Sequence record: LR756511.1
Reading direction: 5' to 3' (one strand)
DNA length: 64,000 nt
The notes beneath the pieces were generated by a model that was given only the letters and a program-made list of their open reading frames with translations, did no database searches and had not been told where the DNA came from. The position numbers were made by a program, and so were the translations under genes. This document shows, one piece after another, positions 343 through 61,909 of the stretch. Each line of letters starts with the position of its first letter. Within the stretch, counting starts at the first letter, position 1.

Positions 343-717
343 ATGTTAAACTTCAAAGAATATTGCGAGGCTATGGCTGGCGGTAGAGCAGATGTTTATA
401 AGATCAGACATGATCTACCCTCTAGTGTGGCTGCACCGCCACCACAAATGGGACAAAGAAGCAAGCCATTGGAAGACACTCTTGATTATTCAAAGTTAAA
501 AGCTAGCGATATTGGCAAATATGAAAACGCTTTAACAGCAATCGCCAATTCAATTGTTGCCCCACCTTCTTTTGCTCCTAAGCCTACCAAGATGGGAGAA
601 ATAAGGGAGTTAGAACCAGCCGACATTGCTGCAACTCACGCAAAGGCAGCAATGGCATGGCTAGGTAATTATGCTAGGTATCGCGCAACATCGCATTTGC
701 GCTATGGTACTTATTAA
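343..717 (+). CDS. Small protein with capsid-targeting-like N-terminus (MLNFKEYCE)
   Basis: Start reassigned from track start 118 to ATG 343; the extension overlaps the opposite-strand gene. Confidence 0.6.
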   Translation: MLNFKEYCEAMAGGRADVYKIRHDLPSSVAAPPPQMGQRSKPLEDTLDYSKLKASDIGKYENALTAIANSIVAPPSFAPKPTKMGEIRELEPADIAATHAKAAMAWLGNYARYRATSHLRYGTY

Positions 718-901
718 CGCTTAAACTATAGAACACGTAGGTCGAACCAGTCGTCAGCATTTGCTGTATATTTGGCGAGTGTTGGATTGTTTGGCCACCA
801 ATGACAAAAATACCTTAATGCGTGCCGCTAAGTATGCTGGAATTGATGAAAAGGATTTGGATGCAGCAATTCGCGCATTGGGGAATAGAATTATGCATAG
901 C

Positions 902-1294
902 TTAACGCTCCACCTTCTGTCTCATAATGCCATATTCTTCGTAATTTGGTTCGCCGTTTATAAGCCTAGTAGGTCCACCAAATGTAAATTCAACCTTATG
1001 TAAAGTTTTAACGCCTTGAGTATTGGTAATACGAAATGTTACATTTAACTGGACTTTCTCAAAAAGGCACCCGTCGCAATAACGATATTCCTTTTCCTTG
1101 AAATCCACTTGGTTAGGATCGTCAAAATGATTGTCAATCCATTCCATCACCTTTTCCATATACTTCTTGTCTTCCTCTTCGGACATATCATACTTCTTAT
1201 AAGTATAATCACGCCCCTTTACAGGCATCGTATCTGGCTCTTTTTCATATTTACAACCCGCAAACACCAACATAATTAAAGCTAGCTTTCTCAT
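902..1294 (-). CDS. Putative lipoprotein
   Basis: MRKLALIMLVFAGC signal peptide with lipobox-like Cys. Confidence 0.55.
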   Translation of the reverse strand: MRKLALIMLVFAGCKYEKEPDTMPVKGRDYTYKKYDMSEEEDKKYMEKVMEWIDNHFDDPNQVDFKEKEYRYCDGCLFEKVQLNVTFRITNTQGVKTLHKVEFTFGGPTRLINGEPNYEEYGIMRQKVER

Positions 1295-1614
1295 ACATAC
1301 ACCGTCCTGTAATAATGGGAAACAGGCATACATCCCAACGCCGTCAGTAATGCCTTTATATCTTCACGATTAAAAACAACAACATCTTCCATCCACCTCC
1401 ACCGATATCCGCATCGAGCAAATCTCCTAAAAGGAATCAATTCGCTAGGCAACCTTGTACGTAAAGCTACTATCTGTTCGTATTTGGCGAACAGATAGCA
1501 GTATGGTTTACCGATTTCGCGTTGGCAAAAGCCACGTTCCTCAATATAATCGCACATAACTAGCAATTCATCTATTGGAACGGACTTTGGCTTACGTGGT
1601 TTAACCTTTATCAT
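1291..1614 (-). CDS. Hypothetical protein
   Basis: ORF track; 4-nt overlaps with both neighbours. Confidence 0.55.
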   Translation of the reverse strand: MIKVKPRKPKSVPIDELLVMCDYIEERGFCQREIGKPYCYLFAKYEQIVALRTRLPSELIPFRRFARCGYRWRWMEDVVVFNREDIKALLTALGCMPVSHYYRTVYV

Positions 1615-2576
1615 TTCACTTTAAACCCAAGCTCTCTCATTCTGTTTCTATCCCAAAGTTCAGAATTAGGGTATAATAAATGAAACTCGTCCCATTTATC
1701 CTTCGATATTTGTTGCCTCCACCATCCTTTAATCTCTACATAAAGGTCTTTATCTTTTAAATAAAGATCGCAGTAATAGGTTCCGCAACTCAAATTAAAT
1801 GCCACTTGCCAATCGAAATCAATTTTGTTTGCATTCAAATATTCTACCACTTGCTTCTCGTACCCACCACAGCAAAATAGTTGGTCGCCCGTTTTCCAAT
1901 GTGTAAATTTGCATGTTTTGCGTGCGCTTTGTTTGCTTTTTACCAGAAATTCTCTTTTCAGCATTACATGCTCAACGCCGTATCGTTCTAAGCAAGTTTG
2001 CTTTCGTTTTTCTTTGGCCCGTTCATAACAGCCGTATCCCACAAAAATTGAATTAGGAGTTGTTTCGAACTCTCCGTAATCCCGATCTATAAATTTGCAT
2101 TTTATCTGAGTGTCCACAAAACTATCTTCTACAATTGTAAGCTCTGGCGGTAGTCGAGTCTTAATTTCCTCAAGAGTTAATAGACTGCCGCCACGCTTTT
2201 CGGTTAACTGTCTCTTCCTGTGTTTTTTGAATTTCAACACGTCTCTTGGTTTTGCAATAAATTCCCCATAATCAGCATCAATAAATGTTGCTTCATTTTG
2301 TAGTGAAGTATATGTTTCTTCTTTGATTTTTAAGTATAAAGGCAAACGACTGGCTAGTTCCGCCACGGTCGTTGTCGCACTTTCAGCCTGCTTCTTAATT
2401 CCTCGTTTTCTATGTCCGTGCCCCTTCCACACATCCTTTGGCACCGCCCAAAACTCACCATACTCATTGTCAATGAATTTTGCCTTTTTATGCGTGTTTA
2501 CATAAGTGGATTCGTCTAGCGTAATAAAAGACGGCAAACGTTGTTTTGCTTTGTCAATCGAAATTGGTTTTTTCAA
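1611..2576 (-). CDS. Putative homing endonuclease (repeated DNA-binding modules + PD-(D/E)xK nuclease)
   Basis: Three FIDxxYGEFxxxP repeats, KQTCLERYGVEH segment, C-terminal CDLYLKDKDLYVEIKG; TTG start with GGAGAG SD. Confidence 0.75.
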   Translation of the reverse strand: MKKPISIDKAKQRLPSFITLDESTYVNTHKKAKFIDNEYGEFWAVPKDVWKGHGHRKRGIKKQAESATTTVAELASRLPLYLKIKEETYTSLQNEATFIDADYGEFIAKPRDVLKFKKHRKRQLTEKRGGSLLTLEEIKTRLPPELTIVEDSFVDTQIKCKFIDRDYGEFETTPNSIFVGYGCYERAKEKRKQTCLERYGVEHVMLKREFLVKSKQSARKTCKFTHWKTGDQLFCCGGYEKQVVEYLNANKIDFDWQVAFNLSCGTYYCDLYLKDKDLYVEIKGWWRQQISKDKWDEFHLLYPNSELWDRNRMRELGFKVK

Positions 2577-2577
2577 A

Positions 2578-2618
2578 TTACTCTCCTATATGTATTGGTG
2601 ATACATATAGGAGAGTAA
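2578..2618. promoter_or_regulatory. Perfect 18-bp inverted repeat covering the endonuclease SD
   Basis: TTACTCTCCTATATGTAT-tggtg-ATACATATAGGAGAGTAA. Confidence 0.85.
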
Positions 2619-2624
2619 AAGGTT

Positions 2625-3752
2625 TTAATAGTTCGGGTTAATTATTTTTAATTTAACCCTACCAACTCGTTCATCCCATCGTTCCTTGACAGGAGTAACG
2701 ACGATGCCCTCAGCAATATGGTGCGTAAAATCTCGCATCTGACTGTTTCTGTTAGCCATTACAATCAGTTTGTCGAAATCAAACGCCATATTCTCTTCAA
2801 TTACAGGAACATGCGGAATTTCATACTTATTACAAGTCGCAAGAAAGTCAGGAAAATCCATCCACGTTCCGTCAGGCTTTAATATATCAAAACAAGCAAA
2901 GGTATGCTTGCCTTTACAGCCAAAATCCCATCCTTTTACCATACCATACGCCTCTCCGTAAAGCGTATGGTTCGGATTTGCCACGCAGAATTCCCGAATT
3001 GCAGGAGTATTCTCCAGAACGATCCACCAAAGATTCTTCTTTGGTTGCCAATTCTGAATCTTAACCATTGCCCGCTCAGCCTTCTCTTGAGCCTTTTCTG
3101 GTTCTTTTCCTGTTTTAAAATGGGCAATCAGTTCTTCCATCGTTGCCGTAGGCTTCGTGGGGTATTCACGCTTCCATTCATCGCGGGAACCACAGAAAAG
3201 CTCTCCATCCTTAAAAAGATATTTTGAGGATGCTCCGTGAATCTTCTCAGTTACAGCAACTTGCTCCCCATCAATATAAACCATCCGCCCCCATTTAAGA
3301 AAAGCGTCTACGTCATATTTCGGATAAATGCCAGAAGGCGGCTTAGTCGCTTCCCCGCCAGTCAGGAAATGCGAAGCCTCAATTGCTGGTTGCCAATGTT
3401 CAACCCCCAACTTATCAGCAATATTATCCCCAACCTTAGACCCAGCGGGAGCGGGGACTAACAGCCCATATGAAACATAACCGCGAAGTTTTTCAGTCCT
3501 AATACGAACCTTGCCATCCTTAGCCTTGGGAGCAAGAAAAGCAAATTCTGGCCTACTTACATCTACTTCGCTATCTGGCGGAACCCATGCGGCAAGATCG
3601 CCTACCTTCCATGCGCTTAATTGAACGCAAGAGGAATAATCATAAATATCGACTAACCCAAGTTTATCGGCATTGGGGTGAGTTCGAATCTCTTTAATTT
3701 CCAGAACTTCAACCTTATGGGTTGACTTCTCCACTGTCATTGTGCTTTCCAT
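2625..3752 (-). CDS. RNA ligase, DRB0094/Rnl2-like family with N-terminal OB fold
   Basis: HPNADKL and WKVGDLAAWVPPDS OB region; TEKIHG motif I, LYGEAYG, FACFDI, EGIVV, LKIIN. Confidence 0.85.
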   Translation of the reverse strand: MESTMTVEKSTHKVEVLEIKEIRTHPNADKLGLVDIYDYSSCVQLSAWKVGDLAAWVPPDSEVDVSRPEFAFLAPKAKDGKVRIRTEKLRGYVSYGLLVPAPAGSKVGDNIADKLGVEHWQPAIEASHFLTGGEATKPPSGIYPKYDVDAFLKWGRMVYIDGEQVAVTEKIHGASSKYLFKDGELFCGSRDEWKREYPTKPTATMEELIAHFKTGKEPEKAQEKAERAMVKIQNWQPKKNLWWIVLENTPAIREFCVANPNHTLYGEAYGMVKGWDFGCKGKHTFACFDILKPDGTWMDFPDFLATCNKYEIPHVPVIEENMAFDFDKLIVMANRNSQMRDFTHHIAEGIVVTPVKERWDERVGRVKLKIINPNY

Positions 3753-4200
3753 TACTTCCCTCATTAAAGTTAAAGCCTTTCCAGCGTTCTTTTTGTTCCT
3801 TTGTTGCGTACAGCTGGAATTCCGCATAGGAGGCTGGATGTTCCGTATAGCCGCTATAATACAGCCACGGAACCCCATAATTGTCTACAATCTTAGTTGT
3901 AGCTTCACCTTTGTCTAATGCGTCTTCTAGCCTATCGGCACAATCTACTAATTCCCTATGCAATTCACTATTTTGTCCGTCAATGCAAGGGATGCGACAC
4001 CTACGCAACCGCGATGCAACTTCACTCGCCGCTTCACGCAATACTTCTATTTCGGTATCACGCATCAACAAGCTTTTGACACAATCCGCTTCCATCTGGT
4101 TCAGGGTTTCTTGCGACAATCCTGAATTTTCTAGCAACATTGTGCCTTGCGTCATGCCGACAAGGAACTTTGCTTTTTCTATCGCTTCTTTAATGGTCAT
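3715..4200 (-). CDS. Hypothetical protein
   Basis: ORF track; carries CAGCTGTAC copy 2 at 3808-3816. Confidence 0.55.
   Translation of the reverse strand: MTIKEAIEKAKFLVGMTQGTMLLENSGLSQETLNQMEADCVKSLLMRDTEIEVLREAASEVASRLRRCRIPCIDGQNSELHRELVDCADRLEDALDKGEATTKIVDNYGVPWLYYSGYTEHPASYAEFQLYATKEQKERWKGFNFNEGSNGKHNDSGEVNP
3808..3816 (-). promoter_or_regulatory. CAGCTGTAC motif copy 2
   Basis: Exact 9-mer 55 nt upstream of the RNA ligase ATG, inside the preceding ORF. Confidence 0.55.
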
Positions 4201-7267: not shown

Positions 7268-7269
7268 CA

Positions 7270-7547: not shown

Positions 7548-7882
7548 GTCTCCGATCTGATTCCGTTTGTACAGCTGCAATCTGCCGCGTGTGCTAGCTC
7601 TGGACTAGAGTTTATTCTATGGAATAACTCTTCTGGCGAGTAGCCTGGAAAAGATTTGCCTGTCGCATGAAGATGTTCCGCCTTCCAATGACAGCCCTTG
7701 ACGATATCACAAAGCGTTATGCCGTTTTCTTTTACATAACCGCCATTGGGGAAGCAAGATCGGTCAATAATGTGGTGGCAATCCAGCTTGCAATCATTTC
7801 TACCACACATGACGCAGCGGTAGCCGTCCCGCTCAAACACGGCGGTTCGAAATGCTTCACGGACTTCCTTCTTGTTCTTCAT
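7544..7882 (-). CDS. HNH endonuclease
   Basis: VFERDGYRCVMCG, CHHI, NGITLC...CH. Confidence 0.85.
   Translation of the reverse strand: MKNKKEVREAFRTAVFERDGYRCVMCGRNDCKLDCHHIIDRSCFPNGGYVKENGITLCDIVKGCHWKAEHLHATGKSFPGYSPEELFHRINSSPELAHAADCSCTNGIRSET
7569..7577 (-). promoter_or_regulatory. CAGCTGTAC motif copy 4
   Basis: Exact 9-mer in the HNH 3' end, just upstream of the structured segment. Confidence 0.55.
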
Positions 7883-9299: not shown

Positions 9300-9305
9300 T
9301 ATATA
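9300..9305 (+). promoter_or_regulatory. Late-type TANATA box (TATATA)
   Basis: 5 nt before ATG 9311, no SD. Confidence 0.6.
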
Positions 9306-9310: not shown

Positions 9311-9550
9311 ATGGACTTCAAGGGTTGGTTTTACACAGAAGGCACACGCACACCATATAAATTAGGACTTTATCCTGATCTATATGACTTTGTTGGGCAA
9401 TATCCACCATTATACGCCGCACCGATTTCAGCCGATTTTGCCTATTACTATTACACTTATTTCGGCCCAAATGGAGCGCCAAGCAAAGATGGATTAGTTT
9501 GGTATAAGCCAATGCACGCGGCTAATGCGCCATATAAGCTACCTCGTTAA
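9311..9550 (+). CDS. Tyr/Pro-rich small protein with capsid-targeting-like N-terminus (MDFKGWFYTE)
   Basis: ORF track; isolated plus-strand gene. Confidence 0.7.
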   Translation: MDFKGWFYTEGTRTPYKLGLYPDLYDFVGQYPPLYAAPISADFAYYYYTYFGPNGAPSKDGLVWYKPMHAANAPYKLPR

Positions 9551-10684: not shown

Positions 10685-11460
10685 TGTTTCCTTTGTTCTG
10701 GCGTAGATGAAACCCACAATACTTCGCTATCTTGCCAGATTGTGTATTTAGTTACACGGAATTGATATTCTGGCTTAGCTTTCGTCATTAAGTTGAACAT
10801 TTTAAGAGCGTGACGCACATCAAAGGTGCCATGCACGCCAGTAGACTGCCAGCACTCTCCACTGGCAGAAAAGTCTTTATACGGCTGATCGTCCGTTAAA
10901 GCGCAGAAATCCATATTATATTGAAACCAATCGCCTTCGCCCTTGGCTTCAATAACATAAACTTCATACTTTCCGTCGTTTCTTAGCACGTCGCCGCTCC
11001 ATTTCTTTTTTATGTTCGGCTTCAACTCTAGCGTGTCTATAAGTCTTATTATATAAGTCTTTAGGGTGAATCCAGCTTTTATGGTCTGGTGGCGTATAAG
11101 ATAAAGCTATATTCTTCCATTTAGGGTCTTTATCGTTCTTATTTTTCCATTGAACCAGAAAACCTTCGCCATCATAGCTCCAGTGCGGACCTTCGTGCTT
11201 GCAGCAGCCTTGACAGGTGACTTCATACAATATGGGCTTAGATGGACATTGCCGTATCATTTTCTTCCTTTTAGGTATTCCTCAACAGTGTCATATAAGA
11301 CATTCTCCAGTTTGTCATAGTCATCGACAGATAATTCTTCTAGAATATCCGCCAGTTTTGGGAATTTGGACATAGCTTTTAGGACTTCTTCAACGATTTC
11401 GTCTGCGAAGATCATCTTTAACTCCATTTGAAAAGGGCGGTCTGTCCCCAGCCGCCCCAT
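10639..11460 (-). CDS. Three hypothetical ORFs (10639-11025, 10964-11260, 11257-11460)
   Basis: Overlapping co-directional ORFs; starts uncertain. Confidence 0.5.
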
Positions 11461-11726
11461 TCGTGATCGTTCGTTAATTCAAGATAAATCCACGTTCCAT
11501 TAACCGCTGGTTGATAGCGGATTTGCACCACTTGTTCCCAATGACGCGGGGTTGGTGGGCATTTGAATACAGAATTTGTTCCACATGCCCCGCAACCTGA
11601 GTTTCCTTGACATCCAGACCCACAAAATGAACAATTTAAATTGGTTGTGCTACGACAGCCTGAATCGCAACTGCAACTGATAACATCGCCTAATTTAACT
11701 TGATCTGCTGTAATAAGTGTTTCCAT
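11418..11726 (-). CDS. Small Cys-insert protein, paralogue B
   Basis: ADQVKLGDVI-CSCDSGC...nine Cys...-VVQI...YLELTND..WGGWGQT. Confidence 0.6.
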   Translation of the reverse strand: METLITADQVKLGDVISCSCDSGCRSTTNLNCSFCGSGCQGNSGCGACGTNSVFKCPPTPRHWEQVVQIRYQPAVNGTWIYLELTNDHEWGGWGQTALFKWS

Positions 11727-12215: not shown

Positions 12216-12830
12216 TTAATTCCCATAATAGGGATAGGGCTTTCCCCATTTACCTTTTTGCCAATCTTCATATTCTCCACCTTCTCTTGGTGGATCAAAA
12301 CTCTTAATCCTGAGATTTTTAGTTTTATAGTATTGGCCCATCAAACTCTCTACCTGTCCCCACGAATCACCAACAATATAATAATCGTATTCGAATGCTT
12401 TGGGACCATACGCCCGATATAATTGTGTTCCACCATCTTTTAATTCGTGAATGCCTGGAGTAAGGTTTGTAACCTTACACAGCGAGTATTTCCTTCCGTA
12501 TGTAAAAGTTCTAATATAGTCAATGATATAAACATCATAAACTGGCACTATATGTCCTAAAGTCGCGCCGTGCGGGTTAGTTTTTTCATCATACGTGGTT
12601 GGAAACGATACAATCTTCGTGCGTGAAAGAATGTTTGGTTTGTCCTTCGCCCAATTTAAAAAGTATTGTGCAGTCCAAGCACAGTTGCCAGAACCAGGAT
12701 TTTCTTTGCTGGTTCCCGCAATGCCCAATTCGCATTTCGGAAATTGACCCTTCATGTAGTCATAAAATGCGTCGGCTACTTGCATAGGCTTACTCTGTAA
12801 ACCTTCCAACCATGTGCTGAATGTTATCAT
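12216..12830 (-). CDS. Putative Cys-His-Asp (papain/transglutaminase-like) enzyme with capsid-targeting-like N-terminus
   Basis: MITFSTWLE; GNCAW, GHIV, IIDY spacing; TAAATA box 4 nt upstream. Confidence 0.5.
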   Translation of the reverse strand: MITFSTWLEGLQSKPMQVADAFYDYMKGQFPKCELGIAGTSKENPGSGNCAWTAQYFLNWAKDKPNILSRTKIVSFPTTYDEKTNPHGATLGHIVPVYDVYIIDYIRTFTYGRKYSLCKVTNLTPGIHELKDGGTQLYRAYGPKAFEYDYYIVGDSWGQVESLMGQYYKTKNLRIKSFDPPREGGEYEDWQKGKWGKPYPYYGN

Positions 12831-12834: not shown

Positions 12835-12840
12835 TATTTA
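12835..12840 (-). promoter_or_regulatory. Late-type TANATA box (TAAATA)
   Basis: 4 nt before ATG 12830. Confidence 0.55.
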
Positions 12841-13347
12841 ATGTACCACGTTCATAATTCCCCACTTGACTTCTACGTTATTCTCGCCGTAATGCTTCCG
12901 AAGAATCTTTAATTGTTCTTTGAATTGCTCTACAAATTCGATGATTTCAAGCTGCATTAAATTGAGTGTAATTTCTTGTGCGAAGAATTCAGTGCTATGA
13001 GGATCGAACGACCATTCTCTACCTTTGTTCCGAAGATTCGATACCCAAATATCAATGTTATTCTTTTTCCTCCAATAATGGTAATAGTCCCCCATAGGAG
13101 ATATCAGAGCTTCATCCAATTCTTCATACAATTCATATTGGTCAATTTTGAGAACATTTTGTTTGTATTCCACGTCCCCAATTGGTGAACCACAGTCAGC
13201 GCAGAATTTCGCCTTTGGGTTATGATACTCCTTTTTATGTTCAGGACATTTCTTACTAGTGCAAGAACGGCGCGTTAGCACCGCTTCAGCCTTTTCGTTC
13301 TTGCACACAACATAAGGGCCAGCATGGACAGTATAATCAGTACCCAT
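12838..13347 (-). CDS. Zinc-ribbon-containing hypothetical protein
   Basis: CTSKKC...FCADCG. Confidence 0.6.
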   Translation of the reverse strand: MGTDYTVHAGPYVVCKNEKAEAVLTRRSCTSKKCPEHKKEYHNPKAKFCADCGSPIGDVEYKQNVLKIDQYELYEELDEALISPMGDYYHYWRKKNNIDIWVSNLRNKGREWSFDPHSTEFFAQEITLNLMQLEIIEFVEQFKEQLKILRKHYGENNVEVKWGIMNVVH

Positions 13348-22409: not shown

Positions 22410-24513
22410 TCATGTACAGCTGTAAACTCCACCTAGCCTTAGAAACAAGTCGAACACTTCCTTTGGGACACTATACCACCGCAAGCCATCCCAAACTTCA
22501 TGTTTGTCTCTATTGCCAACCTTATCTTCAATGATTTGTGCTTTGCAAGCTTCCTGAAAAACCCATTGTTTTATCTTGTAATTAGGGTTTGGTGAATCGA
22601 ACTCCGTAAATATCATTCCGCCTCCTGCTAGTTAAATCTGCTGACTAATAGCGTCTACTCCGAATTGAATGCTTTGTAGACCGCTCTCAATATCCTGCAC
22701 CCCTGTATCCAAATCTTCCAATAGGGATTCAAGGTCATGGTAAAGCTCACGTATTGCATCCCTTGTCTTTGCCAATTCGTTCTTCTTGGCTTCAATTTGC
22801 GTACAAAGGGACTGCACCTTTTTAAGCTGAATCTTGGTCATTAGTAGGTCCAGTTAGCGGACTTAACCTCTGTAGATTCTGGATAGAATACTACATGAAA
22901 TTCCGCTCGTTGTGAAGGCTTATCGCCACGATCAAAGAAAAATACGATTAAATAGTAATTTGGTCCCACTCTCTCAATGCCGCTACGATCTTTCACGGTT
23001 TGAGAAATGAAGTTAAAATTACTGAATACATTATCAACAATTTCGTGTCGCTCGTCATTCAGGTTCATGTTAATCCTTAGTAATTATAGGCATAACAAGC
23101 CCAACAAATAACCCCAATGATGGGCACCAAAATAGTCAAATAGCCAGCGAACAATCGCAGGAGATTGTAGGGCACCATGTCCAAATTATAGCTACCTGTC
23201 AGACGGAGTATCAAACAGATAACCCCATGCCACAAGCCGCCAACAGCATAGGCAATTGCGCCAATGTATCCGTCAATCATCTCCCAACTCCCATTTCAAA
23301 AAGGCTTCAAGACCTTTCATAAATTCGTCTCGTCCGTAGCGATACTTAATCTTAACAACGCCATCCTCAATTTCAGCCCACCAGTCATTGCCAGAATTAA
23401 GCTGCCACTTATAACCGCCACCGAATGAAGTATCCTTGGAGAAGACGCCTTCATCCGTATCGCAAACAATACGGGCGATACGCTTCATGAGCGATTCTTC
23501 TTTGTCTGGTTTGACCCAGCGACGGTGTAACTTGAAGCTAATTTCCATCTTTCTTCTCCACCATTGGCCAGATAATACCATACTTCCGAAGAACGACACG
23601 CGCTTCAGGGGAATTGTTCACGAATTCCGTGAACATTTGGATTGCGATGGTATTAGGAATCCTGGCGCGGACAGGAACCGTGGCAGGATCATAGCCATGA
23701 GTCATTACTAGCTCGTTGCCAAGCTCCATGAGTACAGCTTTAAGATTCACTTTTCCTCCAAAGCTGGTAGCTATCCCACACTTTTGTTAAGTAATTAACG
23801 ATTCCAACAAAGGTTTTGCGCGATCCTTTACCTTTAAGCCTGAGAACAGGACTATCGCCTTTATAGATTAGGAATTCAATTTGGGAATCGGTAAGGTCGG
23901 CCATATCCGACTTAGCCCTTTTAACCATTTTACCTACGTCTTCGACAGAAAGCTCCCACTCTCTTCCTGCTGTTTCGAGCATGAAGGCTTGGCTTGCTGG
24001 TCTAAACGTTAGACGGAAGTTGATTAGTTTCATGGGGTTTTGCGAATTTGCAAGTGTGTGTTGTCAGTGGTTGATTGCAATACTGACATAGCCCTCGCCG
24101 TTTACATTCCCAGCGACGTTGGATTTCTTTATGAAGTTCCGCGTCCGTGTATTCATCCAGGTCTTTTGGATAGCCCATTATGCACTCTTCTGGCAAATTG
24201 GATTGGTGGTGTACAAAAACTCCGTAAGCTCAGGATCAAGACTGGCAAGCCAGTCGCATTGATTTTGGCTTAGCTCAAATTGCCCATACTTGTTTTTACC
24301 TGAAGTAATTTCGAGTGCGCTTTCGCCCATTGCGCACCAGTAAGTTGAGCTTGCCTCAAACTGACGGCACTTGTAGTATACCATCGCTGGCGTATCGGCG
24401 CCAGGATCATCGGGAACCACGCGCTGACGATCAAGAACAACGCGCAACCCACGATACTCCCAAATCTTGTAGCGGTCGTCAGAGTGAACCAGCTTGCTTC
24501 GTGTGAATTTCAT
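22410..24513 (-). CDS. Block of about nine short hypothetical ORFs
   Basis: Tightly packed 64-117 aa ORFs from track; variant motif AAGCTGTAC at 24539-24547 precedes the block. Confidence 0.5.
22414..22422 (-). promoter_or_regulatory. CAGCTGTAC motif copy 7
   Basis: Exact; 46 nt upstream of the histone-like gene. Confidence 0.65.
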
Positions 24514-33253: not shown

Positions 33254-33854
33254 GTTTGTGCCTTCTTTGGGGGTTGCCCGTAATCGCGGAAGCCGCACTT
33301 CGACTTCGCAAGTGTCTTGTACAGCTGTGAATCGCCCCGTAGGGTAACTGTATATGGGTTCCCTAATGGACGACTGTACTCGTCTGGTGCCGATGGAGGC
33401 ATCCCATCCCAATATTCCTTAATATACTTGTCCCGATGGTCCTGAGACAAATGAAGGCTAAAACCATCGGGACGGGCGCCCCACCCTCGTTCACTTTCTT
33501 CCCAAAGCTGAACAAATACCTTCGGCATTATTCACCTTCCTTTACAAGCTTCAAAGAAGCTGCCTTACTACCCCAATCGCAACCAGAAATGTCTTTAAGG
33601 TCTTGCAAATCCAAGACGCCCCTTTTAATCAAAATTTCTACTAAACGACCTAAAGCCTCGCAGACGACTTTAGGCTGATTTTCAAGGAAGACCCTCTTTT
33701 CGTCGCTGTCGTAAAGGATGGAATCATACATGAATCGTTGAATGCTGTCCCTTTCCTTACCGACTTCGCCCTTCCAAGTAACCTTGTCGTATTCAACATC
33801 CACAAGCCACCTCCTTAAACCGCATAACGCAACGGATGAGCGTGTTCGCCACAC
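33250..33854 (-). CDS. Two hypothetical ORFs (33250-33528, 33528-33854)
   Basis: ORF track. Confidence 0.5.
33319..33327 (-). promoter_or_regulatory. CAGCTGTAC motif copy 8
   Basis: Exact; 65 nt upstream of ATG 33253, inside the preceding ORF. Confidence 0.5.
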
Positions 33855-35591: not shown

Positions 35592-35602
35592 AAACGGTGT
35601 TT

Positions 35603-35611
35603 GTACAGCTG
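35603..35611 (-). promoter_or_regulatory. CAGCTGTAC motif copy 10
   Basis: Exact, intergenic, context AAATTCACAGCTGTACAAAC. Confidence 0.7.
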
Positions 35612-35633: not shown

Positions 35634-35639
35634 TACATA
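35634..35639 (+). promoter_or_regulatory. Late-type TANATA box (TACATA)
   Basis: 5 nt before ATG 35645, no SD. Confidence 0.6.
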
Positions 35640-35644: not shown

Positions 35645-36106
35645 ATGGATTTTAGAGGATTCGTACTGAACGAACTAAACACTGGCTATTATTATGCTGT
35701 GCTTGACCCGCACGGACAACTAGAAATAAGTCCTAAATTCCCCAATCCACAAGAACGAGATATGGATATGGGAGAGCGACAAGGACGGAAAATTAACATT
35801 CCACCTAATGCTTTTCAGATGGAGATTCCTGGTTTAACACCAGCCGATGATGAATATGAGCAAATTCAAACCGCATTCTGGAATAGATTAGGCTTTGGTC
35901 ATCGTGCTGGTGGCAATGCACCACCAGCATCCGTTAGCGGCGCCACTATCTACCCACAAGACTTTAGCGGCGATTATTGGAACAAGGTAGCCGCCAAGCA
36001 AAACGCTCAGCGGCTACCTTTTAAGACCAAAGAAGGCGGAACATTCAATTTAAGACCTAGAAAGCCGCAATCGGGTGATGAGACGATTGACTATCCAGCC
36101 CCTTAA
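35645..36106 (+). CDS. Protein with capsid-targeting-like N-terminus (MDFRGFVLNE)
   Basis: Start reassigned to ATG 35645. Confidence 0.65.
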   Translation: MDFRGFVLNELNTGYYYAVLDPHGQLEISPKFPNPQERDMDMGERQGRKINIPPNAFQMEIPGLTPADDEYEQIQTAFWNRLGFGHRAGGNAPPASVSGATIYPQDFSGDYWNKVAAKQNAQRLPFKTKEGGTFNLRPRKPQSGDETIDYPAP

Positions 36107-37245: not shown

Positions 37246-38925
37246 TCATCCTTTCACGATTGGCAATCTTCGCCCAATTCCAAACGCAACTGGCGTAATC
37301 TTGATCCCAGGTGCCGCTTGCCGACGCTTGAATTCGTTATTATTGATTTTGCGGATCATTTTCTCGTAATCCGCTTTCGCACCCTCAGATGTAAGCCATG
37401 CCCGAATGAAATCCCGATTCGTAGAAGTGCCTTTATAAGAGTCAAGGAACCATCCGCCAAACGCTTCAAAATCGCCAACATATCCTTCCACATATCCATT
37501 AACAATCGCATCAAGAATAGGATATGGAAGCAAGCTAGCCTCGTCCGTTTGTCCAGGCGCCAATTCAGCACTCGGAGCCTTCGTCAGAATGTTTTCTGGA
37601 ATAACAGCTTTCGCACCATGCCGAGCATTATATTGATTGGCAAGCTTGTAGACTTCCATCTTATAAAGGTCATTAATCGGACAGAAACCACCGTTCATAT
37701 CACCGTAAAGTGTGCAATATCCCAATGCTAGCTCAGTCTTATTGCCAGTAGACAGCAATAGAGCGCCGTAAGCATTGGAGAAATACATGAGAATTAGACC
37801 GCGTAGGCGAGCCTGAATGTTCTCATTGGCAATAGGATAAGGACGACCCATCTCCAAACTAGTTTGAATATGATTTACCCAGGCTTCGTGGTCAAATCCA
37901 ACCCGATGATCGTGGCATCCCAAATTTGCATGTAACTGTTTAGCATCATTAATGGAATGCTCGCTACTGATAGCGGACGGCATACGGATACCATGCACGT
38001 TATCAGGCCCAAGGGCATCGCACGCCAGAGCAAGCGTTAAAGCACTGTCAATACCGCCGCTACTGCCGACAACAACTGTCTTAAAACCACTCTTGGTTAC
38101 ATAGTCCCGCAATCCCATCTTGAGCATTTCATAAACATCATCGTATGGAGCGGACGGAGGGGGAGAATTCCAGCTATTGTTAAAGAACAAATGATCGCCA
38201 AGCTGATTGCATGTTCTTAATCCGCCGTCATTAGCAATGAAACTGTTTCCATCAAAAACAAGCTCATCCTGCCCGCCAATTTGGTTGCAGTAGATAATTT
38301 CGCCGCCTCTCTCACAGCTATGACAAATCATCTGCCGTCGTTTTGCGGGTTTTCCCTGGACATACGGAGAGCTATTAATGCTAATGATCTTTGTTACACC
38401 AACATCACGGTATTGCTGGAGCGGATTGGTGTTATAATTGTAATCGTCGCTATCCTTGTCATTCCATAGGTCTTCGCAGATACAAATGCCCCACTTCTCA
38501 CCCTTAATATTAAGAACGGTTAGTTCCGTCCCAGGTTGAAAGTAGCGACCTTCATCAAAAACGTCATAGAATGGGAGAAGGTGTTTCTGATAAGTTGCCA
38601 CAATTGCGCCACGGCGAAGAACAGCCGCCATATTACGGAAAGGCTTACCGTAACCACAGTGGTTATGGTCCACATAACCAACAACAATATAAGCATTCGA
38701 ATGTTTGGAGCTTCCTTGTATAAAACTCAAGAATCTAAGATTATCTTCAATAAACCCCTTACGAAACATCATATCCTTACAGAGATATCCAGGGATGGAC
38801 AACTCTGGAAAGACGATTAAATCTGCCCCTTCTTTGTCACCTAGAATAATCCCCTGTGTAATCTGCTGGTAATTACCCTCAAAATCACCAGGAGTCGTAT
38901 TAATCTGGCATAACAAAGTCTTCAT
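37246..38925 (-). CDS. nadE: Glutamine-dependent NAD+ synthetase
   Basis: Nitrilase triad FPE/YQKHLLP/ICEDLW; SSGGIDSA, ENIQARLRG, TGNKTE...YCTLYGDM, KAPSAEL, EFKRRQ. Confidence 0.95.
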   Translation of the reverse strand: MKTLLCQINTTPGDFEGNYQQITQGIILGDKEGADLIVFPELSIPGYLCKDMMFRKGFIEDNLRFLSFIQGSSKHSNAYIVVGYVDHNHCGYGKPFRNMAAVLRRGAIVATYQKHLLPFYDVFDEGRYFQPGTELTVLNIKGEKWGICICEDLWNDKDSDDYNYNTNPLQQYRDVGVTKIISINSSPYVQGKPAKRRQMICHSCERGGEIIYCNQIGGQDELVFDGNSFIANDGGLRTCNQLGDHLFFNNSWNSPPPSAPYDDVYEMLKMGLRDYVTKSGFKTVVVGSSGGIDSALTLALACDALGPDNVHGIRMPSAISSEHSINDAKQLHANLGCHDHRVGFDHEAWVNHIQTSLEMGRPYPIANENIQARLRGLILMYFSNAYGALLLSTGNKTELALGYCTLYGDMNGGFCPINDLYKMEVYKLANQYNARHGAKAVIPENILTKAPSAELAPGQTDEASLLPYPILDAIVNGYVEGYVGDFEAFGGWFLDSYKGTSTNRDFIRAWLTSEGAKADYEKMIRKINNNEFKRRQAAPGIKITPVAFGIGRRLPIVKG

Positions 38926-52212: not shown

Positions 52213-53784
52213 TTATTTGTCTAAAACTAACTCCATCTGAGAAATGGAAAAGCTGCCAGAAAAGGCAATGATAATCATGTCTTTCTTTGCTGCCTTTTCG
52301 CCTTTTCTATTCATGCCATTAAACCATAGATGAGTAACCATCAAATGCTCTGTCGGACCTTCATATCTGTAAAGTTGCTCATTATCAACACTAACTTTAA
52401 CGCTGTTCTTTTTAACAATAAACTCTATTTGACTTTCCTTGTTGATCGCTAAAGTTTGCTTGTTTACAGGAGTGACCGCCGATTTACTCCCGCCAAATGG
52501 AATGCCAACAGAGCTTTCCATGCCATTTAAATCTCCAAAAATGGCACTACACATAGCCTTATCAACAATAAAACCAACAACAAACTCAGAACCGCTTAAT
52601 CGCTTAACCTTCATGCGAAGAGTATAATTACCAGAAACCTTATAAGGAATTTGCAGTCGCGCCGCAAGACCAGCACCAATAAGGTTTCCATCTACTTTGG
52701 TCCAATCGCCCCAAAGCTTATCTTTTTCAGGATCAATTAACTGCAAAAGATTCTTGGTTTCGGTTTTTGCTTCCTCGATCTTTTTAGGCTCAATTTTCGG
52801 CTTTTGTGCCACGCTTTGTTTTGAACCGAAAAGGAAATATCCAGCGATACAAGCCAGAACAATCGCAGAAATTAAAAAACTAGATAAAATAACAAGAAAA
52901 AGCTTCTTGCGATGTGGCTTTTTAACTAACTTCGTCTTTTGCTTTACAAAAGGTTGTAAAGCCATAGCTAGCTCGGCAGGAGTTTGATAACGGTCGGCGG
53001 CATTTTTGGCAAGCATCTTTTTAACCACACCGCCCAAAGCTGGAGCTATGTCCTTGCGAATTTCTGTAATTACTCTCGGCTCCTCAAGAACTCTAGCACT
53101 AAGACGTGCCAACATATCCTTGCCCTCAAAGGGCAGTGAGCCTGTAAGAAGATAAAACAGTGTACAACCCAAACTATAGATATCACCACGAATATCAACC
53201 TTGCGAGAATCGGTAGCTTGTTCGGGCGACATATAATCAACAGTGCCGACGACATTGCCAACTTGAGTTAAACGAGTGTTTCGGTCCTTCTCGTCTTCAA
53301 CAAGCGTCAGACCAAAATCCAGCACTTTAACCATTTCCCCCTTGTCCGTTTTGGCCAAGAAGAGATTGGCTGGCTTGATGTCTCTGTGAATTAAACCCTT
53401 TTCAAAAGCGTGTTGCAATCCAAGAGCGGCTTGGCGGATATATTCGCAGGCTTGTGGAATTGGTAGCGGACCTTTCTTCTTTACCAAATTACCAAGATCA
53501 GTACCTTCCATATATTCCATTGCGATATAATTAATCCCATCTACTTCCTCTGCGTCGTAGATAGCAACGATATGCGGGTCGGAGAGTTTGGCAGCGGATT
53601 TGGCTTCTCTTTGAAATCTAGCTAAAGCTTTCTTATTGGAGATTTTCTCGTTTTTGATTATTTTCAATGCGACGATACGATCCAGCTTGCGATGGCGGGC
53701 TTTGTAAACAGTGCCCATGCCACCTTCACCAAGTTGTTCGATTAGTTCATAGCTGCCAATAGAATTTGAAACTTCACTGGACAT
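52213..53784 (-). CDS. Hanks-type Ser/Thr protein kinase with TM helix and C-terminal domain
   Basis: LGEGGMGTVYKA, VALK, HRDIKPAN, DFGL, GTVDYMSPEQ, DIYSLG; hydrophobic helix near aa 295-320. Confidence 0.95.
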   Translation of the reverse strand: MSSEVSNSIGSYELIEQLGEGGMGTVYKARHRKLDRIVALKIIKNEKISNKKALARFQREAKSAAKLSDPHIVAIYDAEEVDGINYIAMEYMEGTDLGNLVKKKGPLPIPQACEYIRQAALGLQHAFEKGLIHRDIKPANLFLAKTDKGEMVKVLDFGLTLVEDEKDRNTRLTQVGNVVGTVDYMSPEQATDSRKVDIRGDIYSLGCTLFYLLTGSLPFEGKDMLARLSARVLEEPRVITEIRKDIAPALGGVVKKMLAKNAADRYQTPAELAMALQPFVKQKTKLVKKPHRKKLFLVILSSFLISAIVLACIAGYFLFGSKQSVAQKPKIEPKKIEEAKTETKNLLQLIDPEKDKLWGDWTKVDGNLIGAGLAARLQIPYKVSGNYTLRMKVKRLSGSEFVVGFIVDKAMCSAIFGDLNGMESSVGIPFGGSKSAVTPVNKQTLAINKESQIEFIVKKNSVKVSVDNEQLYRYEGPTEHLMVTHLWFNGMNRKGEKAAKKDMIIIAFSGSFSISQMELVLDK

Positions 53785-57738: not shown

Positions 57739-57938
57739 TAATCCTCCAACATAATTCGTAATAACGGCCACGCAAATGAAATCATTACAATACCAAAAAC
57801 AACAGCCAATAGCGTTTGGATAGGATGAAATATACTACCCCTATTAATTACAGCGGGAATGAGGATTAAGGCTTGAATGATCCAAAATCCCCATTCCCGC
57901 CATTGCACAACAAAATAAAAACCATATTTCTTTATCAC
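57738..57938 (-). CDS. Small membrane protein
   Basis: Two hydrophobic helices. Confidence 0.5.
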   Translation of the reverse strand: MIKKYGFYFVVQWREWGFWIIQALILIPAVINRGSIFHPIQTLLAVVFGIVMISFAWPLLRIMLED

Positions 57939-59620
57939 GGTTTCCTCATCGCAATAGAGTATAGTGCATTATCCTTAGCAAACATTGCCGTAGCCGCCCG
58001 ATGATATAGCATCATACCATTATCAATCGCTGGATCGGTGACAACCTTAGCACTGCTAAGCTTGTCAACATGGAAGAGTTCGATGTTCTCGTCCTCGTCA
58101 ATATGGACGCAAACACCATTATCCAGCACGGTAAAGTTCAAACCCATATAAGTAACATTCTTCTTATGGGCAACTTCGTAGTTTTTCCAATCCTTAAAGG
58201 CGAAGGTGAAGCGGTTATATTCGCCCTTCTTATCCACCGCAACCACCATCAGAATCTTGCTCTCATACTTCGCATCAATTACCCTGTAACCATCCAATTC
58301 CCGCAGAGCAATCTGCTGGCATTGCTTGCTTTCAGGGAAAACCGAAGCATAATAAGCATCAAATAGATTCTGAATGACAACGCCTGGATAGAACTTCGTC
58401 GCCTGTTCCAACACGTTACCAACCACATGCGGAGATGCCAGAATCTTATTCCCGATTTCCGTTAGCATGATTTCAAGAACATTCATGCCGTTCTGGACAT
58501 ACAGCCGCCCATCATAATCCATGACCTTTTCACCAGCACAGGTGAATTCAATTTCCTTATCGTTCTTAAGATCATAGAGTTTGACGTTATGGTTATCCAA
58601 CCATGCTATCACTGGATCATTGGAGCGAGTAAAACCCACCCACACCTTTTCGGCCTTGTTGTCATACTCTCTCTTATCCACGAAAATGCTCTTGCTGGTC
58701 ACGATTACTTCCTTGCCGTAGGAGTAATAGTAACCAATCACGTTGGAGTCAAATTCTCGCAGTTTGTCGATGCTCAAGGTCTTACCGCCCACCATTTTAA
58801 CGGTAGGAACAACAACGTGAATCAACGCAACCGTGTCGCTTGGAGGCGCAATCCGTTCGCCTTTCTCTAGAACCGCCTTATACCACTGTAAATAAGCGTC
58901 TGGAATAACCGAGAATGGCTGGCACGCCGCAACAGGATAGCCCACTTCCTTGCTGAAAATGGTAACATTATGCTTCATCCTGCTGTCTAAATCCGTATAA
59001 ACAGGATGCTTACCCTTATAAGGGTGAATACCAATGAACATCTGGAAGGAAACAACCGCAAATGAGAACCAATCGCTTCCCTTCGTGAACTTGCCGCCAC
59101 AATGACGGTCATGAATGCTATCCATAATCGCCATCGCTGGATAGTGTGGCGTCTGGTAGCTGTTCACGTCGATAAAGAACACTTCTTTGAAGTCTTTATC
59201 CAGCAAGAAGTTAAATTCATTTAGATCGACAACCAAGATGCCATTGTTATGAACATGGTGGATTGTCTGCTGCATCTGGCGAACAAGATCAAATACTTGT
59301 TCTGGTTTGATATTGTTTCTTACTCGGAAGGCTTTGGTAAAGATTTGGCAGAGGGTGTACGTATCCTTTAAATATCGCATGGTAAAACCTACGCGACGAT
59401 CTTTCATATCAAATAGTGTGTCCTCTGGTTTGATAATGTGACTATCCGAAAGTAAAGAAAGTTCATTAAACTTTCCTTCGGGAATCATCTTTGCTGGATC
59501 AGCATAGAGCTTGTATGCCGTATTCCCTTTAATGAATATTTTACCTTCTCCACCCTGCGCTAGAAAGTCAGCATTGCTTAACTCGACAACCTTGTTGGTC
59601 CCTTGTAATCTGACTTTCAT
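57935..59620 (-). CDS. YegI-like protein kinase with C-terminal beta-rich region
   Basis: LAQGGEG, AYKLY, GFTM, VVDLNEFNFL, FIDVNSY, DWFSFA, HPYKG. Confidence 0.8.
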   Translation of the reverse strand: MKVRLQGTNKVVELSNADFLAQGGEGKIFIKGNTAYKLYADPAKMIPEGKFNELSLLSDSHIIKPEDTLFDMKDRRVGFTMRYLKDTYTLCQIFTKAFRVRNNIKPEQVFDLVRQMQQTIHHVHNNGILVVDLNEFNFLLDKDFKEVFFIDVNSYQTPHYPAMAIMDSIHDRHCGGKFTKGSDWFSFAVVSFQMFIGIHPYKGKHPVYTDLDSRMKHNVTIFSKEVGYPVAACQPFSVIPDAYLQWYKAVLEKGERIAPPSDTVALIHVVVPTVKMVGGKTLSIDKLREFDSNVIGYYYSYGKEVIVTSKSIFVDKREYDNKAEKVWVGFTRSNDPVIAWLDNHNVKLYDLKNDKEIEFTCAGEKVMDYDGRLYVQNGMNVLEIMLTEIGNKILASPHVVGNVLEQATKFYPGVVIQNLFDAYYASVFPESKQCQQIALRELDGYRVIDAKYESKILMVVAVDKKGEYNRFTFAFKDWKNYEVAHKKNVTYMGLNFTVLDNGVCVHIDEDENIELFHVDKLSSAKVVTDPAIDNGMMLYHRAATAMFAKDNALYSIAMRKP

Positions 59621-59817
59621 GGATATCCTCCACGGCAATAATGCCGTCATGAATCTCGCCGTGACAATTTGCACAAACGAGAATGCACTTGTCTAGTTCT
59701 CTTTGCACAACTTCCCAATTCCGCTGGCGGTTCTGTGATATACTAAAATCTTTTTGTGTCGGGTCCAAATGGTGAAAGCATGAAGATTTTCATGGTTCGC
59801 CATTTGTTGACTGTCCA
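59568..59817 (-). pseudogene. Truncated and frameshifted HNH endonuclease remnant
   Basis: FHHLDPTQKDFSIS...ELDKCILVCANCHGEIH lacks an in-frame start and the N-terminal CxxC. Confidence 0.65.
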
Positions 59818-59818
59818 T

Positions 59819-60493
59819 TCAGGGTATTGCCTGTTGGTAATCGTAATCTTCGAAATCCTGGGCATAAATTTCACGTATAGTCGCTTTTAATTTTATATTG
59901 TAAAAATCTTCATAAGCTGGAATTTTTGGAGGAAAAACTTTATAAAACTTCCTGTCCCCTATAAATTTATGTAATGGCACTTTAACATGATGATGGTCGC
60001 TTGTTAAATCAGTCTTAAATTTACTTCCAGTAAGCTTATTAATCTTTTTAATCTCTTCTGTAAGATTTTCCACCTTTACTATTTTGTACTTGTCATTATG
60101 TTCGTCGCTTTGATATTTCCAATGTGGATTGCAATAATTCAAATCTTCTGTTTGTAAAAACTTAACAAAATCTTCGAATGAAAATGATAAAGCATCAAAT
60201 GCTTTATGCTTTTCCTTAAGAAAAATATCAAACCCGCCAATCGACCTGTGGTATGGATTCCTGACTATTTTAAACTTAAAAAACTCAGGATTATCAAAAT
60301 CTTCTGGTGATGGTTCACCAAACTCAGAATAAAAAATAAGCTCTCTAAATTCATGAACCCAAGGATGATACTTCAAGGCTCGATCTAAAATACCCATATT
60401 ATCAAAGAACATTTTAATTGCTGTTGTACATGCCGCCTTCGGCGTCCAACCCATAATTATTTTATTTTTGCGGTCAATTAAAGGGGTTATCAT
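59819..60493 (-). CDS. Sulfotransferase family 2-like protein
   Basis: WTPKAACT, KFKIVRNPYHRSIG, FEDFV, HWKYQ, YAQDF...YDY. Confidence 0.8.
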   Translation of the reverse strand: MITPLIDRKNKIIMGWTPKAACTTAIKMFFDNMGILDRALKYHPWVHEFRELIFYSEFGEPSPEDFDNPEFFKFKIVRNPYHRSIGGFDIFLKEKHKAFDALSFSFEDFVKFLQTEDLNYCNPHWKYQSDEHNDKYKIVKVENLTEEIKKINKLTGSKFKTDLTSDHHHVKVPLHKFIGDRKFYKVFPPKIPAYEDFYNIKLKATIREIYAQDFEDYDYQQAIP

Positions 60494-61743
60494 ATCCTAC
60501 TACAGTAATTATAAACCAAATTTTTTCCTTAAATCCTTCAAGGCAAGCCTCATTTTGTTGTCCAGTTGATCTTGGCTTATTGTCTATGCTATACTTCGTA
60601 AAAACTTTCCTTGCAGCTAAATATTTTTTTCTATATTCGTGAAATAATTTGTCTTTTATTTCCTTGAAGTTACTGTAATGAGCAAAGGCATAATCGAAAC
60701 CTTCCTGCTCAATCACTTGTCGGACCTTCGACAAGCCCTCTTCCTTCATTTTCCTCTGGCTCATACATGATTTCCTTCCGCAAATCCTTGCCACTGCAAT
60801 TCGGACACATTGCATGGCGAGATATCTTCATTCTGTCCTTGATTTGATCGGCAGGATCAAACCCGCCGCCAACCATTGTATCGCAATTATTGCATATAAT
60901 TGCATACATTACCATATCATCTGCGCCAAAAAATACGTCAATATAACCATCGACGCACTCGGAGCATCCAGACTGACATTTTGGACACTTTGCCTTGAGT
61001 TTTGTTCCTGGTTTCATTTTTTCCCTCCGAATCAACGCACCAAGACAGTTGAGCCGTCTTCAAATGTTACTTTTGCATATAAGTAACCATTCTCACACGT
61101 AATCTCGCTCTTTTCAGGCTTAATACCACGCCAGATTTTATACTCATATTTCAGAGATTCTTTCCATGCAGGAGTTGGGTCACTAAACCCCATGAATGCT
61201 GAGCATATTCGCTCTGGCAGTTCTATTAAGCAAACAATAAAGCAAAGAGGAACAACATACAAGAAAAACCTAAGCGTCTTCATACAATTGATATCCGTTT
61301 TCAGAAGTAAAACGAACTTTAATTACATCTGGTTTCTCGCCAGGAAACAAGGCATTTAATTCTTTGGTTTTCGCAGAACATTGATCGGGCCACAGCGTCT
61401 CTTCCGTGTTAAACCCATAGTAAAGGCCGATAATCTCAAGATACTGGTATATCCTACCAGTTTTAGAACTTTGAAAATAACATATTCCTGGTTTAAACTC
61501 TCCCTTTTTACCAAGGGCAACCTCTACACCAATGATACGCCATTCAGGCTTGATAAGTTCCCAAAGCTGTATTTCCGCAGCTTTGAACGAATATAAATCA
61601 GCGTGTTCGCCTTTGGAGTATTTGTCGTCTTTATTTTCGTCTAGCTCAAAGGTCCAGCCATGTTTAAGCAAAAACTCATGGTCGATTTTGTGCTGCTTTT
61701 CGTGTTCTTCAGCGAGCCAAGCCAAACCTTCTGTAGTGCCCAT
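60474..61743 (-). CDS. Four hypothetical ORFs (60474-60749, 60709-61017 Zn-finger, 61032-61283, 61270-61743)
   Basis: ORF track with adjusted starts. Confidence 0.5.
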
Positions 61744-61744
61744 G

Positions 61745-61909
61745 TTATTTCTTCTGTTTCTTCATTTTTTGTGGATACGGCTTGCCATTTGGCTGTGCGC
61801 CCCACACATTTGCATTTGCCTGAACATCTTTTGGCACTTTATTTCCAATAATACCAGGAGCCGCACCGCCCATTTCCTTTAATTGCATCCAATCTTTAAA
61901 TGTTTTCAT
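61745..61909 (-). CDS. 54-aa protein with capsid-targeting-like N-terminus (MKTFKDWMQLKE)
   Basis: TAAATA box at 61915-61920, 5 nt before ATG. Confidence 0.65.
   Translation of the reverse strand: MKTFKDWMQLKEMGGAAPGIIGNKVPKDVQANANVWGAQPNGKPYPQKMKKQKK

Follow-up and report, generated by a model that had tools for sequence, protein, structure and literature searches.

The subject of this work is a group of five genes found in a 64,000-nucleotide stretch of DNA (the window), which is identical in sequence to positions 62001-126000 of LR756511.1, an unannotated 595,163-bp assembly of an uncultured phage that probably stems from a metagenomic survey of huge phages of 2020. The products of these genes share a short N-terminal sequence, referred to below as the tag, and each gene is closely preceded by a hexamer of the form TANATA, referred to below as the box. 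The rest of LR756511.1 was retrieved as overlapping pieces and analysed piecewise, and genes were called by a simple in-house procedure based on a codon-usage score. Coordinates are those of the window unless the record is named.

Three of the tagged genes are located on the plus strand, amid minus-strand genes. The first (343..717) encodes a protein of 124 amino acids beginning with MLNFKEYCE, an orphan with neither a homologue nor a family match, and its box, TAGATA (332..337), ends 5 nt before the ATG at 343. The second (9311..9550) encodes a Tyr/Pro-rich protein of 79 amino acids, also lacking a family match, which begins with MDFKGWFYTE; the box TATATA (9300..9305) lies 5 nt before the ATG at 9311. 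The third plus-strand gene (35645..36106) specifies 153 amino acids starting with MDFRGFVLNE, and is preceded by TACATA (35634..35639), again 5 nt before the ATG at 35645. The other two genes are on the minus strand. One of them (12216..12830), coding for a protein of 204 amino acids that begins with MITFSTWLE, has the box TAAATA at 12840-12835, 4 nt before the ATG at 12830, and bases 1-3 of this box form the stop codon of the upstream gene 12838-13347. The last gene (61745..61909) encodes 54 amino acids, with the start MKTFKDWMQLKE and a basic C-terminus; here TAAATA (61920-61915) stands 5 nt before the ATG at 61909 and shares bases with the stop codon of 61914-62105, the gene upstream. The five starts and the position of the box, 4-5 nt upstream of each, were thus confirmed exactly as the initial annotation had given them, and all five reading frames were called as genes, each of which has its place between the adjacent genes.

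Both strands of the window contain 2,534 ATG triplets. The peptide pattern by which the tag had initially been defined occurs at five of them and the box at eight, and all five ATGs with the pattern have the box. The number of boxes is close to that expected from base composition (roughly 10, by our own estimate); what exceeds chance is the co-occurrence of the pattern with the box, together with the genome-wide positional peak of the box described below, and not the box count. Only two further genes of the window start at a box-ATG, and both are untagged (11418-11726, minus strand, and 62955-63731, plus strand). The former begins with METLITADQ, which bears a faint likeness to the start of T4 Alt, given as MELITELF in the T4 record; this may be a coincidence.

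A Pfam search assigned no family to any of the five window proteins, and PHROGs gave nothing for the four that were checked singly; the 54-amino-acid protein was covered by pooled scans only, the member hits of which were not itemised. For the 204-amino-acid protein, four homologues of 53-60% identity were found, all of which keep F4 and W7 of the tag, and in which the motifs GSGNCAWTA and GHIVPVY (with C50 and H93) are invariant, a hint that the protein could be a Cys-His hydrolase. Its structure model is mediocre (predicted local distance difference test score, pLDDT, 66), the tag being helical in the model with low confidence. No significant match to this model was present in the PDB, the top faint matches being to N-terminal glutamine amidohydrolase, which has a Cys-His hydrolase fold (probability 0.1-0.16). 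When phmmer was used exhaustively, three distant homologues of the 153-amino-acid protein (33-45% identity) were detected, in which M1, F3, R4, F6, L8 and E10 are unchanged; in a word-indexed search, the 153- and 124-amino-acid proteins matched only themselves. The structure model of the 153-amino-acid protein (pLDDT 46) was unusable.

Tagged genes and the TANATA box across the genome

In the whole 595-kb genome, the strict peptide pattern is present at 28 of 21,968 ATGs, and 19 of these 28 have the box. A box-ATG opens a reading frame of at least 35 codons in 74 cases, of which about 40 begin with M-x(1-3)-[FW]-x-x-[WFY]. This loose pattern was dropped as unspecific, since it matches 2.3% of internal in-frame ATGs, and was replaced by a position-specific model built from the box-ATG starts that resemble it. 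By this model, 56 genes of LR756511.1, about 5% of the total, are tagged. The consensus of their tags is M-[KL]-T-F-[KR]-E-[WF]-[LF]-E..E, with Lys frequent at position 2, and in the five window genes as in all 56 genes the tag begins at Met1 and extends for about 9-12 residues. The tagged proteins range from 52 to 1,076 amino acids and are encoded in every 50-kb bin of the genome, by 24 genes on the plus and 32 on the minus strand (222 and 849, respectively, in the whole genome). The initial annotation described the five window proteins as otherwise unrelated, and this holds for the entire set: an all-against-all BLASTP comparison of the 56 bodies, from which the first 14 residues had been removed, revealed no similarity except for one weak pair (E = 3e-4).

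Few of the tagged proteins were recognised by Pfam or PHROGs, and most have no known relatives. Among those recognised are a NADAR protein (record 521964-522461, minus strand), encoded directly downstream of the capsid gene, and proteins with a 2',3'-cyclic phosphodiesterase domain (tRNA_lig_CPD; record 411782, plus), an RNA-repair HAD domain (HAD_SAK_1; record 582920, plus) and a C39-like cysteine peptidase domain (Peptidase_C39; record 429897, plus), as well as a DUF5661 protein (record 441022, minus) and a protein with sigma region 4 or a helix-turn-helix. A YbiA/NADAR-like gene is also located between the protease and capsid genes of phage XacN1, which suggests that a packaged ADP-ribose-processing enzyme may be an old part of this type of head module. 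The mature bodies are basic, with a median isoelectric point (pI) of 8.8 vs 6.3 for the background, and a pI above 8 in 71% vs 34% of proteins (p = 2.5e-8). The internal proteins of T4 are basic too. Transmembrane content does not set the tagged proteins apart (3 of 56 vs 10% in the background, a difference that is not significant).

Genome-wide, occurrences of TANATA are sharply concentrated where the hexamer ends 4-6 nt before called start codons, with 79 genes there vs 2-3 per position elsewhere. The box occupies this place in 37 of the 53 tagged genes that were called and in 42 of 1,018 other genes (odds ratio 54, p = 7e-34). The alternative considered in the initial annotation, that the peptide pattern might be equally common in genes lacking the box, is at variance with these counts. 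Its proposal that the set can be picked out by the box plus the motif is borne out in part: the search yields 56 tagged genes and a strong association, but the box is neither necessary nor sufficient. Thus, 16 tagged genes have no adjacent box, 12 of them carrying a Shine-Dalgarno motif, and 42 genes have the box and no tag, some of these being virion structural genes, including those for a head-tail adaptor and a tail protein.

The logo of the box, (A/C)TA(A>T>G)ATA, is reminiscent of late promoters of the T4 family. The T4 late promoter TATAAATA spans positions -13 to -6, and its variant in Aeromonas phage Aeh1, CTAAATA, starts from -12 (Nolan et al., PMC1524935). With a 5-nt spacer and the geometry of the T4 and Aeh1 promoters, the +1 position would therefore fall on the A of the ATG. 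A Shine-Dalgarno-like motif was found in only 4 of the 79 box genes, vs 50% of ordinary genes. At the capsid gene, the terminase gene and a gene of the head module encoding 616 amino acids, the same hexamer, which reads TAAATA at the capsid gene, is present farther upstream and is followed by a Shine-Dalgarno leader. Taken together, these features indicate that the box is probably a late promoter and that most of the tagged mRNAs are probably leaderless. Its assignment as late derives from the promoter similarity and from a gp55-like factor. The latter is a predicted small sigma factor with region 2 only (record 464260-464820, plus strand; Sigma70_r2, 31 bits; phrog_234 'late sigma transcription factor', 3e-7; hhalign, 76% vs T4 and XacN1 gp55), which is a candidate for the protein recognising the TAAATA box.

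The sequence GTTTGTACAGCTG, which occurs upstream of the genes at 343 and 35645, was considered as a further part of the tagged unit and rejected, as it is the opposite-strand form of another motif, AAGCTGTAC(A/T)AA, that precedes the divergent neighbour genes. Read on the strand of the minus-strand genes, this motif is found 14 times in the window (2.5 expected), at 303-312, 7568-7577, 22413-22422, 33318-33327, 35602-35611 and nine sites with one mismatch. Its density is high over the initial 45 kb of the record. Many small genes have the motif in front of them, often with TCTCTAAC and a Shine-Dalgarno motif after it, and at about a dozen sites its distance from an ATG is 11-12 nt. It is probably characteristic of promoters of the early or middle class.

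Head genes and similarity of the tag to that of T4

The initial annotation suggested that a gp21-like prohead protease and T4-like head genes should be sought elsewhere in the genome. Both are present, in a head module at 523-537 kb of the record, with the Gp23, Portal_T4 and Peptidase_S77 matches well over the Pfam cut-offs. Compared with the proteins of the T4 record by phmmer, and with Pfam, this module encodes the gp23 capsid protein (1e-35; Gp23, 291 bits), the gp20 portal, which contains an intein (3e-34; Portal_T4, 248 bits), the gp17 terminase (1e-28; Terminase_6C, 33 bits, and Terminase_6N, 23 bits) and a gp21 protease of 222 amino acids (record 525953-526621; 4e-23; Peptidase_S77, 96 bits at a cut-off of 27). 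In an alignment with T4 gp21, the protease keeps the His (GELDHP), Ser (SSRG) and Asp (DAV) that correspond to His85, Ser140 and the triad Asp of T4. The catalytic triad of gp21 has been described, and all characterised proteases of this family cleave after Glu (PMC5694885). About 68 residues precede the Gp23 domain in the capsid protein, which resembles the 65-residue propeptide of T4 (PMC5694885), and an acidic coiled-coil protein of 310 amino acids, without a sequence match, is encoded between the protease and capsid genes, which is the position of gp22. Tagged genes are found inside or adjoining the head module, both here and in relatives.

Two side observations concern these genes. The portal gene (record 531014-533587, minus strand) encodes 857 amino acids, with the Pfam Intein_splicing domain at residues 151-330. 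A second Peptidase_S77 paralogue (record 242240-243133, minus strand; 34 bits) keeps the Ser and Asp and has Gly-Met at the position of the His, in which it resembles gp117, the diverged paralogue of phage SPN3US (PMC5694885).

The T4 tag was given in the initial annotation as MKTYQEFIAE. In the T4 record this is the beginning of internal proteins II and III (IPII and IPIII), and IPI instead begins with MKTFKEF, a start that is found, letter for letter, in one tagged gene of LR756511.1. When the model trained on the huge phage was applied to 877 open reading frames (ORFs) starting with ATG in 81 kb of T4, ipI, ipII and ipIII ranked 4th, 7th and 8th, with tag scores of 5.2-7.7 bits. The T4 ORFs ranked above or between them all start at internal ATGs of longer genes, and therefore ipI, ipII and ipIII are the three best annotated starts. 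A Glu was present 4-9 residues past the first aromatic residue in 33 of 38 tags that had been defined without reference to Glu, vs 37% in the background (p = 3e-10). A Glu stands at +5 in 26 tags (W-L-E), at +8 in 11 (L/A-K/N-E) and between these positions in others, and is missing from five.

Similar genes exist beyond LR756511.1. Close relatives of the capsid protein are encoded by 388 stretches in IMG/VR, of which the best 80 were kept (78-92% identity, contigs of up to 532 kb), and in the 1.08 Mb surrounding the capsid genes of these best 80 of 388 stretches the tag model identified 62 tagged ORFs. Among these relatives, a tagged gene of 100-130 amino acids with a Shine-Dalgarno leader is conserved within the head module. 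An exact DNA pattern for MKTFxEWLE gave 29 matches in IMG/VR, where fewer than one would be expected according to our own chance estimate. The loci so detected have a guanine-plus-cytosine content from 30 to 54% and contain further tagged genes, many of them with CTAGATAGGGC-ATG or CTAAATAG-N3-ATG. The nearest cultured phages by the capsid protein (about 33% identity) are Microcystis phage Mel-JY01, Xanthomonas phages Xoo-sp13 and XacN1, and T4-like cyanophages.

Probable function of the tag and setting of the tagged genes

The explanation that we regard as probable is that the N-terminus common to these proteins is a capsid targeting sequence of the T4 type, carried by a large and scattered set of cargo proteins which are expressed from late promoters of the T4 family. 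The same role had been proposed in the initial annotation, and the follow-up supports it, as every check suggested there that could be made by computation came out in its favour. According to this explanation, the box would serve as the -10-type element in a late promoter of the T4/Aeh1 kind, (A/C)TAAATA, and its location 4-5 nt before the ATG would place the first transcribed base on the A of the start codon or beside it; most of the tagged genes would thus give leaderless mRNAs, each from a promoter of its own. The tagged proteins would be made late in infection, and the tag of about 10 residues would recruit them into the scaffolding core of the assembling prohead. There, the gp21-type (Peptidase_S77) protease may remove the tag after a Glu, and the mature protein, in most cases basic, would stay in the head with the DNA and enter the next host cell together with it.

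Several observations weigh against this explanation. The position of the Glu in the tag is variable, and two residues ahead of it there is often a Trp or Phe in place of the Leu or Ile of the T4 rule; therefore, the cleavage site is not placeable with confidence. No sequence homologue of T4 gp22, gp67 or gp68 was detected in the genome by phmmer. An A/T-rich patch located 15-20 nt upstream of the box is foreign to classical T4 late promoters. The scores behind the gp55-like assignment are modest; phmmer found no match in the genome to gp55, gp45 or gp44 of T4 or to gp55 of XacN1, and the gp55-like candidate came from a later profile comparison. The 41-kb head region of XacN1 contains no tagged gene, and thus not all T4-like jumbo phages have the tag. 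Finally, late timing, leaderless transcripts, packaging, cleavage after Glu, ejection and action in the host are all inferred.

It may also be that the tag does target the prohead, and that most of the cargo proteins are assembly or structural parts of a very large head, such as components of the core, scaffold or inner body, rather than ejected effectors. A 595-kb genome needs a very large capsid, the prohead core of T4 also holds gp67, gp68 and gp22, which are degraded (PMC5694885), and the tagged gene of 100-130 amino acids conserved within the head module of the relatives agrees with such a role. However, many of the tagged proteins are orphans or poorly conserved, unlike structural parts, and several contain enzyme domains typical of host-directed or counter-defence roles (NADAR, RNA-repair phosphoesterases, cysteine peptidase). 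We consider this explanation unlikely, and it is the sole rival of real weight.

A role of the tag in sorting or turnover elsewhere in the cell, as a signal for a phage-made compartment, a membrane or a chaperone, or as an N-terminal degron, seems improbable to us. Such a signal would be compatible with the functional diversity of the tagged bodies and with the helix predicted, at low confidence, for the tag, and it gains from the fact that the capsid location of these proteins is itself a deduction. On the other hand, the tag differs little from that of T4, which was defined by experiment, the matching S77 protease, Gp23 capsid protein and gp20 portal are encoded in the same genome, and tagged genes occupy or adjoin the head module in LR756511.1 and its relatives. 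The enrichment of Glu, moreover, suits a protease that cleaves after this residue, and the basic nature of the bodies speaks against sorting elsewhere as well.

The shared start could also be an element acting at the level of nucleotides or codons, a translation enhancer of the 'downstream box' type for leaderless mRNAs, with no signal in the protein. The 37 tagged genes with the box 4-6 nt from the ATG, the lack of Shine-Dalgarno motifs in box genes and the frequent Lys at position 2 would agree with such a role. Nevertheless, the 42 other box genes, which also lack Shine-Dalgarno motifs, have quite different N-termini, whereas tagged genes without an adjacent box are known, most of them with a Shine-Dalgarno motif, and the internal proteins of T4 carry the same tag on mRNAs with Shine-Dalgarno leaders. 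At the invariant Phe, the codons TTT (34) and TTC (19) are used in agreement with the genome-wide ratio of 57:43, and the conserved aromatic and acidic residues come from different codons. Since the synonymous Phe codons are free, the tag is kept on Shine-Dalgarno genes, and orthologues keep it as well, the sequence data indicate that the tag is under selection as a peptide, not as DNA, and the enhancer is very improbable. No more credible is descent of the tagged genes from one old paralogous family, with the N-terminus as its slowest-evolving remnant devoid of a targeting role: the common start, the often common promoter and the one weak match between the bodies of two members could be so explained, but the spread of lengths (52 to 1,076 amino acids) and the distribution of the bodies among the unrelated Pfam families NADAR, HAD_SAK_1, tRNA_lig_CPD, Peptidase_C39 and DUF5661 could not, and the strong retention of some 10 tag residues in orthologues that are elsewhere only 33-45% identical points to selection on the tag itself.

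Returning to the capsid targeting explanation, it can be taken a step further. The late promoter, start codon and capsid tag might form a portable cassette of about 45 bp, which would make captured ORFs leaderless, late, capsid-loaded and injected, and by means of which a clade of uncultured huge phages with T4-type heads would bring at least 50 fast-evolving, ready-made proteins into the cell; we would give this extension somewhat less than an even chance. Phage proteins borne in the head act before phage genes are expressed, and inhibitors of restriction or of further host defences are to be expected among them above all, as exemplified by IPI* of T4, which blocks GmrSD. Should the tag have the function that it has in T4, about 5% of the genes of LR756511.1, along with similar sets in hundreds of related metagenomic contigs, could be named as encoding head-internal or injected proteins, which would provide a focused, sequence-derived list of candidate counter-defence proteins. 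We know of nothing reported on the packaged content of uncultured huge phages. If correct, this explanation would also mean that the capsid targeting mechanism of T4 has an ancient origin and can be extended to dozens of cargo proteins, and would provide an example of T4-type late promoters fused to start codons, giving rise to leaderless mRNAs. The tag could, moreover, serve as a packaging signal in the engineering of large capsids.

Apart from the tagged genes, the window holds auxiliary genes, among them those for an RNA ligase with an OB-fold domain (2625-3878), an RgpF-like rhamnan synthesis protein (24750-26408) and a glutamine-dependent NAD synthase (37246-38925), all on the minus strand, and sugar-modifying enzymes. 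Two eukaryote-type Ser/Thr kinase genes, at 52213-53784 and 57935-59674 (both minus strand; Pkinase, E = 6e-52 and 2e-6), are separated by a few kb, and this pair adjoins sugar-nucleotide and aminotransferase genes.

Comparison with known systems

The capsid targeting sequence of T4 IPI, IPII and IPIII was reportedly defined by Mullaney and Black in 1996. It has since been reviewed (PMC3012670, PMC5694885), as have the length of the T4 tags, 10-20 residues, and the use of long propeptides by the phiKZ-like giants (Ali et al., PMC5694885). The internal proteins of T-even phages have been described as diverse defence proteins which share only the targeting sequence (Rao and Black, PMC3012670). 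In the literature library searched, we found no paper joining 'huge phage' with 'capsid targeting', none naming LR756511 and none describing such a tagged set, nor any proteomic data on the phage. The novelty lies in the size of the set, which with about 56 proteins amounts to 5% of the genes, in its distribution over the genome and over a clade of uncultured huge phages, and in the fusion of the promoter to the start codon.

The closest counterpart is T4 IPI-III. In both cases a short tag with a near-identical consensus stands at the extreme N-terminus of small proteins that are unrelated and for the most part basic, their genes are dispersed and do not form one operon, and a gp21-type protease, a Gp23 capsid protein and a gp20 portal are encoded in the same genome. 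T4, however, has three such proteins (plus Alt, which has a different propeptide), whereas LR756511.1 has about 56. In the latter, the second aromatic residue is mostly Trp, and the Glu stands at a variable distance, often directly after W-L. In most of its tagged genes, the fusion to a late-type promoter leaves no space where a ribosome-binding site could lie, in contrast to the T4 ip genes with their Shine-Dalgarno leaders. The function of the tag was established by experiment in T4, while in LR756511.1 the tagged genes are known from sequence alone. The polymorphic internal-protein loci of T-even phages offer a related precedent, a constant tag on an exchangeable, fast-evolving set, and many members in LR756511.1 are likewise orphans; those loci are one or a few per genome, however, and the tagged genes described here are spread over 595 kb and both strands.

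With phiKZ, 201phi2-1 and SPN3US, which represent the phiKZ-like giants, LR756511.1 has in common the giant size of the phage, a gp21-related protease, of a family that cuts after Glu, another and diverged protease paralogue in which the catalytic His is missing from the alignment (PMC5694885) and, presumably, many internal head proteins. Their propeptides, though, are of about 80-270 residues and have no common short tag, whereas the tags of LR756511.1 are of about 10 residues with a strong consensus, and several of its whole tagged proteins comprise only 52-79 amino acids. The capsid and portal proteins of the phiKZ-like giants are remotely T4-like, in contrast to those of LR756511.1, which score strongly against the T4 families. 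As to late promoters of the T4 family, the similarity extends to the consensus of the box, its position upstream of the capsid and other virion genes, and the presence of a gp55-like sigma factor. Unlike in those promoters, the third base of the LR756511.1 box is variable, an A/T-rich patch lies upstream, gp45 has no phmmer match, no homologue of gp33 was identified, although no search was aimed at it, and in 79 genes the box stands 4-6 nt from the start codon, which implies leaderless mRNAs.

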